Of a stretch of 64,000 nt of DNA, positions 35,459-40,821 are shown one piece after another. The DNA is from Zygnema circumcarinatum SAG 698-1b (taxonomy: Eukaryota; Plantae; Zygnematophyceae): NCBI GenBank assembly GCA_037447605.1, contig CM074810.1:3320880-3384879 (forward strand). The letters run 5' to 3'. The number at the start of each line of letters is the position of its first letter. Positions within the stretch are counted from its first letter, which is position 1. The translations under genes were made by a program, and so were the position numbers. The notes under the pieces were generated by a model. That model worked only from the letters and a program-made list of their open reading frames with translations, was not told where the DNA came from and did not search any database.

Positions 35459-38400
35459 ATGGCTCGAACGGGCGTCCTTCTCTGCGTGGGCGCTCTTCTC
35501 TGCCTCCTTGCCGCCCTCCAGCCCCTCGCAGCCTCAGAGGCGGGCCTTGAAGCGAGCGTTCCGGGCAGCAGCGCGAGCTCCCATGGCGCGCCGGCCATGG
35601 CGGCGAGCGTGCTGAGCGTGCTGCGGCGCGCGGCCTCCCTCCTCCCCGCGCGGGCCCTCCCCCTCTCCCGCTCCCCCTCCCCCGCTGGCGGGCGCAAGGC
35701 CCTCGTGGAGCCCTCCGCGCGCCTCTCCGCCGACCGCAGCCGCGCGCTCGCTGAGGCCTTCGCGGCCGCCGCGCAGTCCGACGTGGCCGCTGACGTGCAC
35801 GCAGACGTGGCACCGGAAGTGGACTCGCCTGTAGCATCGGAGGAACGTAAGGAGGCTGACGTGGACACTGGATCTGACGTGGCCGGTGACGAGTCCATTG
35901 ACGTGGCACCCGAAGCGTCGGATGACGTGGATCCTGAAGAAACCACTGACGTGGCGCCTGAAGCGTCCAATGACGTGGATCCTGAAGTAACCGATGACGT
36001 GGCACCTGAAGCGTCAGATGACGTGGATCCTGAAGTAACCGCTGACGTGGTGCCTGAATCGTCAGATGACGTGGAGGAGTCGTCGGGATCCGCCTTCCTG
36101 CCCTCCGAAACCGCGGCTGACGTGGCCAACCACGAGGACTCCTCCCTCCCGTCCGACGTGGATGCCGACTCTGACGACGAGTACCCACTGTCCGACCTGG
36201 ACGCCAGCGTGGCCCCCGACTTTGTCCCGTTCGAGGAGGACGCCGAGGTGGCATCCGACGCGAAGTCCGACGTGGAGGTCCTGCAGGACGCCGCCGCGTC
36301 GCTCTCCCTGGCGTGCACGGGCGACGTCGGCGCGACCTTCTCCCGCGCGGCCGCCTCCCTCGCGGCCGCCATGGCGAAGGCCGCCTCCAACGCGGGCTGC
36401 CTGCGCCGCATCTCCCGCGCCCGCTCCGCCGTCGACTTTGGCCGCCAGTACGCCGCCGCCAAGAAGTGGGCCAAGGCGCGCAACCGGGCGGCCTGGGCCA
36501 AGTACTTCCTCTCCAAGTGCCAGCGCACCAAGGGGAGCGCGCTCGACCAGGCCATGGCGGCGGCCTCCACGCAGCTGGAGTCGGCGCTCGCGTGCCTTCT
36601 GAGGGTGGCGAACGCCAACGCGCTGGCGGAGATGCAGTCGGGCACGCCTCTCACCGGGATGCAGGTGGACTCCAATCCGGCGAACGTGGCGGCGTCAGGC
36701 AACGACTACGCCATCTCCTTCAGGAAGGCGACCTACTCAGGTGTGACACGTGGCATGACCTGAAACAGCTTGCTTTCTCACACGTGGCATGACCTGGAGC
36801 AGCTTGATGCCTGACATGTGGCATGTGCTGGAGGCTGACACGTGGCTGCTGCTGCTGCTGCTGCTACTGGTGGCGGGACAGGTGCCCGGCTGCGGTCTCC
36901 AGGCACCTTCACCTCCGGCAAGTTTTCAGTGCGCATGAAATGCCCCTCCGGAGACAGCACCTCGGGACTCAACACAGCGTTTTATGTGAGCACTTGTTCC
37001 CCTCCCTTTTTTTTTTTCACAGAACGGCTGCATTGTAGGATGTGCATGTGCGCTGCTTCAAAGCCTCATCTGTTGTATTTCATTTATTTTGGAAGTTTCT
37101 TGGTTTGAGGCTCTTCCAAGCTCTTCAAGGCGATCAGCTCCTGTCTGTGTATTGACCATGGCGGCGGGTGATGATGCAGCTCTCTTCCAACGCCGACGAC
37201 TCGAAGCGCAACTCAATCATCATGGAGTTTCCGGGACAAAATCGGAACATCGTGCTGCTCAACACCATGATCAACGGCGTCGACGGTTGGAACATGGCCG
37301 TCAACCTTCAGTATGACTGCTCGGCGGACTTCCACGTGTACACCATCTACTGGACCCCTCAACGCATCTTGTAAGCATGCTCTCACAAACTCGTGCTGCA
37401 CTCCAAACCTTCCTGAGGACTTTCATGTTCCTCGAATGCAAAAACTTCTTAAACTCCTTGTTTACTCTTGCTGGCAAAATTTAGAAACACTAAAAAATTT
37501 CCCATTCCCTCTGAACAGGACCAAGTCATTTTCTATGCTTGCTGGCAAAATTTAGAAACCCTAAAAAGTTTCCCATTCCCCCTGAACAAGACCAAGTCAT
37601 TTTCTATGCCTGCTGGCAACCCTAGAAACCCTGAAACATTTCCCATTCCCCCTGAACAAGACCAAGTCATTATCTATGCTTGCTGGCAAAATTTAGAAAC
37701 CCTAAAACGTTTCCATTCCCCCTGAATAAGACCAAGTCATTATCTATGCTTGCTGGCAAAATTTAGAAACCCTAAAACGTTTCCATTCCCCCTGAATAAG
37801 ACCAAGTCATTATCTATGCTTGCTGGCAAAATTTAGAAACCCTAAAACGTTTCCCATTCCCCCTGAATAAGACCAAGTCATTATCTATGCTTGCTGGCAA
37901 AATTTAGAAACCCTAAAAAGTTTCCCATTCCCCCTGAACAAGACCAAGTCATTTGCTATGCTTGCTGGCAACCCTAGAAACCCTAAAAAGTTTCCCATTC
38001 CCCCTTAGCAAGAACAAGTGATTTTTTCTGCTTGCTGCCAAAATTTAGAAACCCTAAAGTGTTTCCCGTATCCCCCTGAAGGTGGAAGAGCGACAACAAC
38101 GTTCTGGAAATCTACGACAAGACGATGTGGGACATCAGCCCCGTCCCTGCTGCGAGCCCCGCCCTCCACGTGTACCTCTCCGTGCTGCACACGCGGTCGG
38201 TGTCAAGCGTGACGTGGCCGCAGCAGCTCTCTCTCAAAGACAGCACCTTCACCGCGTACTTCCAAGACCTCGTATACGCCGCCCCCCTCTCCGCCCTCCC
38301 CAACTTCCCCACGGCGCTGCCCAACACGCGCATGTACCCCATTGGAGTGGACGGCGGGCTATGGGGCCTGGGGGGGGTCTCGGTGGGGGACGACTCCGTC

Positions 38401-40821
38401 AATATAAGCTGCAACGATTGCGGTACGCGTTCTATGTCTCACACAGTCCACGCGATGAGGGGCAAGTTGTTGTTGTTGTTGTTGTGGTTTTGGCGGAGAA
38501 ATCAATTTCGTTTTTAGAGTTTGATTGGTGATTCTCATGGACAGCACTGACTTTGAAGATTTGGAGCTCTCTCTTCCTCTTCCTTGTTCAGGACCACGAT
38601 TTCACAGCACTCGCTACTACCCCTCGGGAGAGTTCACAGGAATGTTCAAATGCGCCGCGGGGGACACAAGCGGCCTCGTCTCCTCTCTCTATGTGAGCCC
38701 ATCTTTATACGCACATTCATACATGCGTTTCTGCAAATGAAATGAAAGCATCTACACCTTAGTCCTGATCTGCATTTCTTCAAATTCAAACCTTGTCTGC
38801 CGACCGACATGCGTCGTCTGAAGACGCCATCAATAGACATGATGCGAACCTAAACTGAAACCCCAACGTTTGTGAATGTGATTTCTGAAGTTGAATGTGT
38901 ATTTCCGAGTGTCTGAGTGAGAGAGGGGCGGCACGTGCGGGACGTGCAGCTGTCCTCCAAGGAGGGGTACCAGGTGGACGGGCAGCCCGTGCAGGACGAG
39001 ATTGACTTCGAGTGGCTGGGCAAGGACAAGCGCAGCGTGCAGCTCAACTACTACGTCAACGGGGTGGGGGGGAACGAATACTTCCTCGACCTCGGCTACG
39101 ACTGCTCCAAAGACTTCCACCGCTACACCATCCGCTACGGCCCCACCAAGATCGAGTAAGCGTGGATGCTCCTCTCTCTCTCCTCTCTCTCTCTCTCTCT
39201 CTCTCTCTCTCTCTCTCTCTCCTCTCTCTCTCTCTCTCTCTCTCTCTCTCTCTCTCTCTCTCTCTCTCTCTCTCTCTCTCTCTCTCTCTCTCTCTCTCTC
39301 TCTCTCTCTCTCTCTCTCTCTCTCTCTCTCTCTCTCTCTCTCTCTCTCTCTCTCTCTCTCTCTCTCTCTCTCTCTCTCTCTCTCTCTCTCTCTCTCTCTC
39401 TCTCTCTCTCTCTCTCTCTCTCTCTCTCCTCTCTGCTCTCGCTCTAAGCTCTCTCTCTCTCTCTCCCTCTCTCTCCCTCTCTCTCTCTCTCTCTCTCTCT
39501 CTCTCTCTCTCTCTCTCTCTCTCTCTCTCTCTCTCTCTCTCTCTCTCTCTCTCTCTCTCTCTCTCTCTCTCTCTCTCTCTCTCTCTCTCTCTCTCTCTCT
39601 CTCTCTCTCTCTCTCTCTCTCTCTCTCTCTCTCTCTCTCTCTCTCTCTCTCTCTCTCTCTCTCTCTCTCTCTCTCTCTCTCTCTCTCTCTCTCTCTCTCT
39701 CTCTCTCTCTCTCCCACTCTCCCTCCCTGACCCTCTTCTCCCCCCTCCTCTCTCTCTCTTTCTCTCTCTCTCTCTCTCTCTCTCTCTCTCTCTCTCTCTC
39801 TCTCTCTCTCTCTCTCTCTCTCTCTCTCTCTCTCTCTCTCTCTCTCTCTCTCTCTCTCTCTCTCTCTCTCTCTCTCTCTCTCTCTCTCTCTCTCTCTCTC
39901 TCTCCACTCTCCCTCCCTGACCCTCTCTCCTCCCCCTCCTCTCTCTCTCTCTTTCTCTCTCTCTCTCTCTCTCTCTCTCTCTCTCTCTCTCTCTCTCTCT
40001 CTCTCTCTCTCTCTCTCTCTCTCTCTCTCTCTCTCTCTCTCTCTCTCTCTCTCTCTCTCTCTCTCTCTCTCTCTCTCTCTCTCTCTCTCTCTCTCTCTCT
40101 CTCTCTCTCTCTCTCTCTCTCTCTCTCTCTCTCTCTCTCTCTCTCTCTCTCTCTCTCTCTCTCCCTCCCTCCCTGACCCTCTTCTCTCTCTCTCTCTCTC
40201 TCTCTCTCTCTCTCTCTCTCTCTCTCTCTCTCTCTCTCTCTCTCTCTCTCTCTCCCACTCTCCCTCCCTGACCCTCTTCTCTCTCTCTCTCTCTCTCTCT
40301 CTCTCTCTCTCTCTCTCTCTCTCTCTCTCTCTCTCTCTCTCTCTCTCTCTCTCTCTCTCTCTCTCTCTCTCTCTCTCTCTCTCTCTCTCTCTCTCTCTCT
40401 CTCTCTCTCTCTCTCTCTCTCTCTCTCTCTCTCTCTCTCTCTCTCTCTCTCCTCTTTGCCATCTCTTTCTTGCTCAACACTCGTTATCCCTCTCCCTCCC
40501 TCCCTATCTCTTCTCTCCCACTCTCCCCTCCCTGACCCTCGTCTCCCTCCCCTTATCTCTCTCCCTCTCTCTCCCTCCATACTCCCCCCCCTGACCCCTT
40601 CCCGTGGCGATGCTGCTGCTGCCTGCAGGTGGCTGGTCGACGGGGTTCTGCGGTACACTGTGTGGAAGTCGGAGGTGTCCGCCTACCCGACGAAGCCCAT
40701 GTTCTTTTACGCCTCCGTGTGGAAAACGAGCGGGCAGTGGGCGGGGCAGTGGCACAACCAGAAGGACACCTTCGTCGTGCAGTACAAGAAGCTGCGCATC
40801 ACTCCCCTCACCGAGGACTAA
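35459..40821 (+). CDS. Secreted modular GH16 protein: signal peptide, acidic repeats, 4-Cys segment, inactive GH16 domain, active EG16-like GH16 domain (7 exons, ~805 aa)
   Basis: Exons 35459-36740, 36882-36985, 37180-37370, 38082-38422, 38592-38692, 38950-39155, 40629-40821; 2418 nt, GT-AG and in frame. Domain 2 has KCAAGDTSGL...YLSS...QDEIDFEWLGKD...QLNYY...LGYDCSKDFH.Y.I...W.VDG...PTKPMFFYASVW (EG16-type). Domain 1 is homologous but has NSIIME in place of DEIDFE. Confidence 0.9.
37480..38065. repeat. 70-71-bp minisatellite (8 units) in GH16 intron 3, right copy
   Basis: GACCAAGTCAT recurs at 37519, 37590, 37660, 37730, 37800, 37871 and 37942, plus a variant near 38012. It is the reverse complement of the left array. 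Confidence 0.95.
39170..40450. repeat. ~1.3-kb near-pure (CT)n microsatellite in GH16 intron 6
   Basis: (TC)n interrupted by a recurring ccactctccctccctgaccct spacer. Other long (CT)/(GA) tracts lie at ~24514-24740 and ~53040-53310. Confidence 0.97.

Follow-up and report, generated by a model that had tools for sequence, protein, structure and literature searches.

We analysed a 64,000-nt window of contig CM074810.1 from Zygnema circumcarinatum SAG 698-1b (the window is the whole stretch of DNA studied, and all coordinates below are positions within it), which carries on its forward strand, at 35459-40821, a seven-exon gene encoding two GH16 domains in tandem. We judge that this expressed gene probably encodes a modular, secreted protein of the cell wall, with an active second GH16 domain (domain 2) and a non-catalytic partner (domain 1). 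The Zygnema locus is a member of a conserved, functionally unexplored EG16-2/GH16 variant. From the N-terminus the modules would be a leader, an acidic disordered repeat, a four-helix bundle resembling pectin methylesterase inhibitors (PMEI-like), a pseudo-GH16 domain, a proline-rich linker and an active GH16 domain of the EG16-2 type. The EG16 and EG16-2 proteins are central to the debate on how the XTHs arose from bacterial glucanases, and no algal member has been characterised; many members from zygnematophytes, peat moss, lycophytes and ferns have a fixed architecture with a pseudo-enzyme twin and a PMEI-like bundle.

The coding region was read directly from the window and spliced by script. 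Its exons lie at 35459-36740, 36882-36985, 37180-37370, 38082-38422, 38592-38692, 38950-39155 and 40629-40821 (all + strand), with GT-AG at every border, and together give a coding sequence of 2418 nt with an open frame, no internal stop and a product of 805 amino acids (aa). The exon and motif coordinates of a preliminary description of this DNA proved exact throughout. That description had also named the joint 38422^38592 as the test between one transcript and two. Contigs from four RNA runs of the same organism were mapped to 38050-39170 only, a stretch chosen to stay clear of a minisatellite in intron 3 and a (CT)n tract in intron 6. The joint 38422^38592 (GT..AG) was carried by one contig each of runs X20 and X9, in which the depth over the intron was zero, and the joint 38692^38950 by contigs of X8 and X9. 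Loose ends of the RNA before 38082 corresponded to the last 30 letters of exon 3 and those beyond 39157 to the start of exon 7, supporting the joints between exons 3 and 4 and between exons 6 and 7 respectively. Furthermore, the X9 contig is 1781 nt long and extends 1339 nt upstream of exon 4, the length expected if exon 3, exon 2 and about 1 kb of exon 1 are joined. The joints 1^2 and 2^3, which lie outside the RNA-mapped stretch, were deduced from their GT-AG borders, the reading frame, the length of the X9 contig and colinear homology over aa 397-799. The tandem GH16 gene is expressed as a single transcript.

It is extremely improbable that the fusion is an artefact, with two adjacent genes or a mis-modelled gene behind it. 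Such an explanation could draw on intron 4 (38423-38591, + strand, 169 nt), which was spliced in X20 and X9 but retained in X3 and partly in X8, and on a poorly assembled locus in which the last exon is duplicated and both a palindrome and an N gap occur. Nevertheless, the exon 4-exon 5 joint was found in two independent runs, the frame is kept across it, and independently annotated orthologues in at least nine genera are colinear across the linker between the two domains. In the intron-4-retaining form, translation stops at 670 aa, just past domain 1. Run X3 contained two further unusual sequences: a second loose end at 38082 with several base differences from exon 3 (agreement 0.85), and a 200-nt contig that matches exon 4 over its first 42 nt only, with two mismatches. 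The odd X3 sequences at 38082 are likely to be transcribed from a paralogous gene at another locus.

The two halves of the gene repeat the same plan. The intron phases are 1,0,2,1,0,2, and exons 2-4 and exons 5-7 are cut at homologous points, namely after "..FY|LSS.." and "..LY|LSS.." and before the tryptophan that stands behind "..RIL" and "..KIE" respectively. When the halves of the protein were aligned locally to each other, the score was 195 and the intron sites coincided in the alignment. An internal duplication of paralogous three-exon cassettes with phases 1,0,2, as proposed from the letters of the DNA, was thus borne out by the score and the shared intron positions.

Domain 2 (aa 630-802; 38392-40809, + strand, across introns 4-6) matched a GH16 profile with 244 bits, and in Pfam the GH16 family (PF00722) was found on exon 6 at 9.4e-16 and on exon 7 at 4.7e-5. 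The best solved-structure match of exon 6 was grapevine VvEG16 (5sv8 at 1.1e-18 and 5dze at 8e-18), to which it is approximately 60% identical over 58 residues, with the Glu-Ile-Asp-Phe-Glu stretch (EIDFE; 38998-39012, + strand) aligned on the catalytic motif of VvEG16. Hence domain 2 has the E-x-D-x-E motif required of an active GH16 enzyme, and it retains 49 of the 55 near-invariant positions of the family. The XTH C-terminal extension (XET_C, PF06955) had no match on exon 7, and the protein ends three residues past the GH16 profile. Domain 2 would act as a retaining endo-beta-glucanase on wall beta-glucans, be it mixed-linkage glucan, xyloglucan or beta-1,4-glucan, in the manner of VvEG16. 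At position 39003, a third codon position (Ile) within EIDFE, three of the four runs had contigs with C instead of T; the change is synonymous and probably reflects a strain or allele difference.

Domain 1 (aa 418-594; 36710-38286, + strand, across introns 1-3) matched a local GH16 profile with 135 bits, and Pfam PF00722 was detected on exon 3 at 8.5e-8 and weakly, at 0.008, on exon 2. Exon 3 also aligned to lichenases and to VvEG16 at about 2e-5. In the alignment with lichenase 3wvj and others, the Ser-Ile-Ile-Met-Glu stretch (SIIME; 37213-37227, + strand) replaces E-x-D-x-E: N-S-I-I-M-E-F stands opposite D-E-I-D-I-E-F, so that the nucleophile Glu is changed to Ser and the Asp to Ile, with the acid/base Glu kept as E478. 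The E-x-D-x-E of active GH16 enzymes is therefore absent, and domain 1, judged from its residues, is catalytically dead. Both assignments agree with the preliminary description, in which domain 1 had lost the nucleophile Glu and the helper Asp at SIIME and domain 2 was an EG16-like domain with EIDFE. A residual activity of domain 1 through other residues is very improbable. E478 is indeed kept, but the nucleophile and the Asp are gone in all orthologues, the third motif position is variable among them, and retaining GH16 enzymes need the nucleophile. Between the two GH16 profile matches lies the proline-rich linker (aa 595-629; 38287-38391, + strand).

The fold of the tandem was examined on the Spirogloea orthologue P0004 (residues 85-491), 39% identical to the Zygnema protein, using an alignment of 15 relatives. 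The model had a mean pLDDT (predicted local distance difference test) of 87.9 and a pTM (predicted template modelling score) of 0.75, and consisted of two beta-sandwiches joined by a disordered linker, the equivalent of the Zygnema linker having a pLDDT below 50. Domain 2 of the orthologue superposed on VvEG16 with Z 33, a root mean square deviation of 1.1 A and 43% identity, and for domain 1 the superpositions on NXG1, lichenase and laminarinase gave Z 20-25. Both orthologue domains are thus predicted to fold as GH16 domains.

An exhaustive protein search with exon 6 gave 539 matches, and approximately 17 of the best 30 representatives were eukaryote proteins with two GH16 domains. About 25 database proteins were colinear with both GH16 domains of the Zygnema protein, and the first domain was dead in every one. 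Over aa 397-799 the colinear alignments reached 5e-88 for P0004 (39% identity), 1e-83 for P0014 and 1e-74 for P0021, and Pfam found two GH16 stretches in all ten relatives scanned. Members came from the zygnematophytes Spirogloea, Mesotaenium, Netrium and several Closterium strains (two of the Closterium members derive from the transcriptome of a predator), from the moss Sphagnum (a cluster of 65), from the lycophytes Selaginella and Diphasiastrum, and from the ferns Adiantum and Ceratopteris. All first domains lacked the nucleophile and the Asp, with AITLE, AATFD, SILMS, VIGFD, LISFD, GINFD and GVSFD among the variants, and their third motif position was E, D, S or V. The second domains had EIDFE or EIDYE in all relatives except Selaginella, where the protein P0025 (EFJ27978) has EIIFE and has lost the Asp; both GH16 domains of P0025 may, to judge from these motifs, be inactive. 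Thus the architecture, which the preliminary description had assigned to an undescribed protein, is not peculiar to this locus and is conserved in Zygnematophyceae, Sphagnum, lycophytes and ferns. Family members are public as 'GH16 domain-containing' or 'hypothetical' proteins, some of them for a long time, such as the Selaginella protein. Among the matches listed there was no seed plant member with a dead first domain. Three relatives, P0151 from Spirogloea, P0058, and P0022 from Closterium, carry an N-terminal DUF642, a plant cell-wall protein family, instead of the PMEI-like bundle.

A tree of 63 domains over 182 columns was calculated with IQ-TREE. The streptophyte GH16 domains formed one clade against the bacterial domains (support 100/100). 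Within it, the 18 dead domains formed a clade of their own (90/83) and were set apart by a branch in 96% of the bootstrap trees, suggesting a single ancient duplication. The simplest reading of the tree would be one duplication and one inactivation before the zygnematophyte/embryophyte split. Three subfamilies made up the dead-domain clade; one is from land plants (100/100), and a zygnematophyte one often has the N-terminal DUF642. Zygnema domain 1 grouped with Closterium (97/83), then with Mesotaenium (99/89) and then with Spirogloea, a position that points to a zygnematophyte. The nearest neighbours of Zygnema domain 2 were two Logan proteins, P0010 (60% identity) and P0018.

Zygnema domain 2 fell outside the land-plant EG16 clade (99/91), which contains Paspalum, Taxus P0028 and relatives. 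With regard to EG16 in the strict sense, the Zygnema protein differs in its signal-peptide-like leader (by a hydrophobicity heuristic), in its two GH16 modules plus a bundle, and in its position outside the land-plant clade. With EG16-2 it shares the leader, on the same heuristic, and the lack of an XTH C-terminal extension. Because domain 2 falls outside the land-plant EG16 clade and the protein has such a leader, we refer to domain 2 as EG16-2-type, and by these features it appears to fit the EG16-2 type better than land-plant EG16. The Klebsormidium EG16-2 proteins have a single domain and formed a pair of their own inside the same streptophyte clade (100/100), the backbone of which was not resolved.

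The part upstream of the GH16 domains begins with the signal-peptide-like leader (aa 1-26; 35459-35536, + strand), which contains a hydrophobic run at aa 5-24 with a mean Kyte-Doolittle value of 2.25, the sole such segment in the protein by the hydrophobicity heuristic. The orthologues begin with similar leaders. Judging from this heuristic, the protein would be secreted. Further downstream, aa 101-270 (35759-36268, + strand) form an acidic low-complexity region of DV(A/D)PE repeats, recognised by composition and with Tandem Repeats Finder (TRF); it has 33% D+E, 2% K+R and eight DVxPE motifs. Inside it lie tandem units of 24/48 nt at 35895-36075, with a TRF period of 48 x 3.8. When exon 1, extended upstream, was compared with protein libraries, no match was found; this query was swamped by low-complexity words.

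The segment between the acidic region and domain 1 (aa 271-394; 36269-36640, + strand) was examined by alignment and by structure prediction. In an alignment of the Cys-bearing segment 36266-36739 and its counterparts from nine relatives, two cysteine residues 40 residues apart (Cys314 and Cys354) were invariant. The AlphaFold2 (AF2) model showed four long helices with a pLDDT of 78 and a pTM of 0.69, in which one cysteine of the pair lies where helix 2 begins and the other where helix 3 ends. Its top structural matches in the PDB were the Arabidopsis PMEI 1x8z, the PMEI chain of a pectin methylesterase (PME)-PMEI complex (1xg2_B) and a tobacco invertase inhibitor, and 27 of the 30 best-matching Swiss-Prot models were PMEI, invertase-inhibitor (CIF) or PME pro-region proteins, with PME/PMEI fusions included. 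In two relatives the Pfam PMEI family (PF04043) appeared below threshold (P0129 at 4.8e-5 and P0007 at 0.006; 24 and 17 bits, versus a cut-off of 29). Three results count against the assignment. The structural matches were weak, with a Foldseek E of about 0.02-0.03 and a template modelling score of about 0.5; PF04043 had no match on the Zygnema segment itself; and a sequence profile of the bundle retrieved from the PDB no PMEI, only designed helical proteins. Pfam on the whole orthologues likewise gave no PMEI match at E up to 0.1. Since the sequence profile against the PDB found designed helical proteins only, the assignment rests on the structure search and the sub-threshold Pfam matches, and we propose with moderate confidence that the Cys segment is a PMEI-like domain. 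Of the upstream parts described earlier, the leader, the acidic repeat and a Cys-bearing segment are all present, but what had been called a "4-Cys segment" is, according to the AF2 model and the structure matches, better viewed as a PMEI-like four-helix bundle. In two relatives, P0129 from Mesotaenium and P0029 from Closterium, only one GH16 domain, an active one, comes after the PMEI-like bundle. This layout suggests that the fusion of bundle and GH16 may predate the dead domain or exist independently of it.

We then considered what domain 1 might contribute to the protein. A glucan-binding role is plausible, and domain 1 could hold or position the polysaccharide for domain 2. As a glycan-holding or targeting module it remains tentative, and we put this at somewhat short of an even chance. 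Several observations weigh against such a role. Across the family, 11 columns were at least 80% conserved in domain 1 versus 53 in domain 2. The branch of Zygnema domain 1 is the longest in the tree (1.06), and the SvW strand of this domain no longer has its Trp, a poor fit to a conserved sugar cleft. The GH16 fold of the tandem is supported by the model of an orthologue of the above identity together with exon-level matches of the Zygnema protein. The retained columns of domain 1 belong mostly to the core (F.G, the fDcs...H.ytI.W block, W..D and yP), whereas conservation is lost in the QDEIDFE, VQTN and SvW blocks, which form the cleft lining of active enzymes. Zygnema domain 1 itself keeps 11 of the 14 near-invariant domain-1 positions. 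With the core kept and the cleft blocks drifting, domain 1 appears to be maintained as a fold, and any ligand that it binds could differ from the domain-2 substrate.

The same pattern, with the fold-determining residues kept and the cleft positions drifting, would also be expected if domain 1 were a structural or regulatory partner rather than a glycan binder, for example as half of an intramolecular pseudo-dimer that would shape, shield or autoinhibit the active cleft. In a variant of this idea, domain 1, possibly with the PMEI-like domain, would be a removable pro-piece. The pTM of the orthologue model may indicate that its two domains prefer a certain mutual orientation, and PMEI-like domains act as pro-regions in PMEs; on the other side, the linker is predicted to be disordered and a processing motif of the RRLL/RKLL type was not found in the protein. 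We regard a partner of this kind as rather doubtful. Even the low conservation and the long branch of the Zygnema copy might be taken to mean that domain 1 is a decaying relic without a function of its own beside an active enzyme. This is very improbable, because domain 1 is intact and confidently folding in each of the 18 representatives, which range from algae to ferns, its subfamilies co-diverge, and it is spliced in frame without frameshifts or stops.

By analogy with the PRO region of group-2 pectin methylesterases, the PMEI-like bundle may serve as a pro-region or a protein-interaction module. A more far-reaching proposal is that of a pro-enzyme system parallel to the group-2 pectin methylesterases, in which the PMEI-like and pseudo-GH16 domains together control the place and time at which an EG16-2-type glucanase acts in the wall. 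Such a system would have originated before zygnematophytes and land plants separated, would apparently be missing from seed plants, and would use regulated retention of intron 4 to release a product with domain 1 only. Taken as a whole, we consider this unlikely.

The combination of modules differs from that of the known systems compared here. EG16 proteins are single-domain and without a signal peptide (PMC8711696), and EG16-2 proteins are secreted, uncharacterised charophyte intermediates between bacterial ExoK/lichenases and XTHs (PMC8711696, bioRxiv 10.1101/835561, PMC9569819, PMC6827312). The text of these four papers speaks neither of an additional, inactive GH16 domain nor of a PMEI-like one. 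According to its description, Figure 4B of PMC8711696 marks "regions similar to EG16" and "active sites" for Klebsormidium proteins. A literature search gave no result for tandem or pseudo GH16 proteins in plants, the study that defined EG16-2 (Behar et al. 2018) being outside its reach. With VvEG16 and land-plant EG16 (5DZE, 5DZF, 5DZG and 5SV8), domain 2 shares the GH16 core and EIDFE, but the Zygnema protein has in addition a leader, three extra N-terminal modules and the dead twin domain. It resembles the charophyte EG16-2 proteins (PMC8711696, bioRxiv 10.1101/835561) in being algal, EG16-like, apparently secreted and without the XTH C-terminal extension, whereas the Klebsormidium EG16-2 proteins differ from the Zygnema tandem in their single domain and separate clade.

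Other proteins with GH16 domains in tandem differ from the Zygnema protein. Bacterial tandem lichenases (GH16_21; P0001, P0002 and P0011) are secreted and have two to three GH16 domains per protein, but ExDxE is present in all of these domains, and their duplications are independent and recent, with domains of the same protein as sisters. Likewise, the grass tandem EG16 proteins of Paspalum and Miscanthus have two EG16-type domains, but both are active, have the motif and are mutual sisters, having arisen by their own recent duplication within the EG16 clade. With the PMEI and invertase inhibitors and the PRO region of group-2 pectin methylesterases, the Zygnema protein has in common a predicted four-helix bundle N-terminal to a wall enzyme; the first PMEI Cys pair is, however, not conserved here, and the partner enzyme is a GH16 instead of a pectin methylesterase. 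The insect GNBP/betaGRP proteins, by analogy only, have a GH16 fold without catalytic residues that is kept for a non-enzymatic role, but they belong to an unrelated lineage, differ in architecture and have no attached active GH16 domain. In the Zygnema family, plants have an example of a pseudo-glycosidase that dates from before the split of zygnematophytes and land plants and has been kept ever since. The architecture of the family changes which construct should be expressed and assayed, and in census trees of "GH16 domains" the dead and the active domains need to be separated.

Finally, the surroundings of the gene are rich in repeats. A 70-bp x 8.7 minisatellite (TRF; 37467-38080) fills nearly all of intron 3, and intron 6 contains a (CT)n microsatellite of approximately 1.3 kb with 647 copies (TRF; 39172-40455). 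Similar CT- and CCTCTC-rich tracts flank the locus. Upstream lies a head-to-head inverted copy on the reverse strand (29839-33354), which covers the promoter, the first four exons and the beginning of exon 5 and stops at a scaffold gap of 100 N (29732-29831). It is 97-100% identical in blocks and has an acidic repeat shorter by 32 aa, and the final ~11 codons of its exon 4, adjoining the gap, contain indels that break the frame. This copy could be either a second gene truncated by the gap or an error of assembly. Downstream, a second, identical copy of exon 7 (41974-42166, + strand) lies within a tandem duplication of about 1.3 kb (40596-41940 and 41941 to about 43250), which spans the last exon, the 3' untranslated region and a CCTCTC-rich tract, and the first 300 nt of which are identical.

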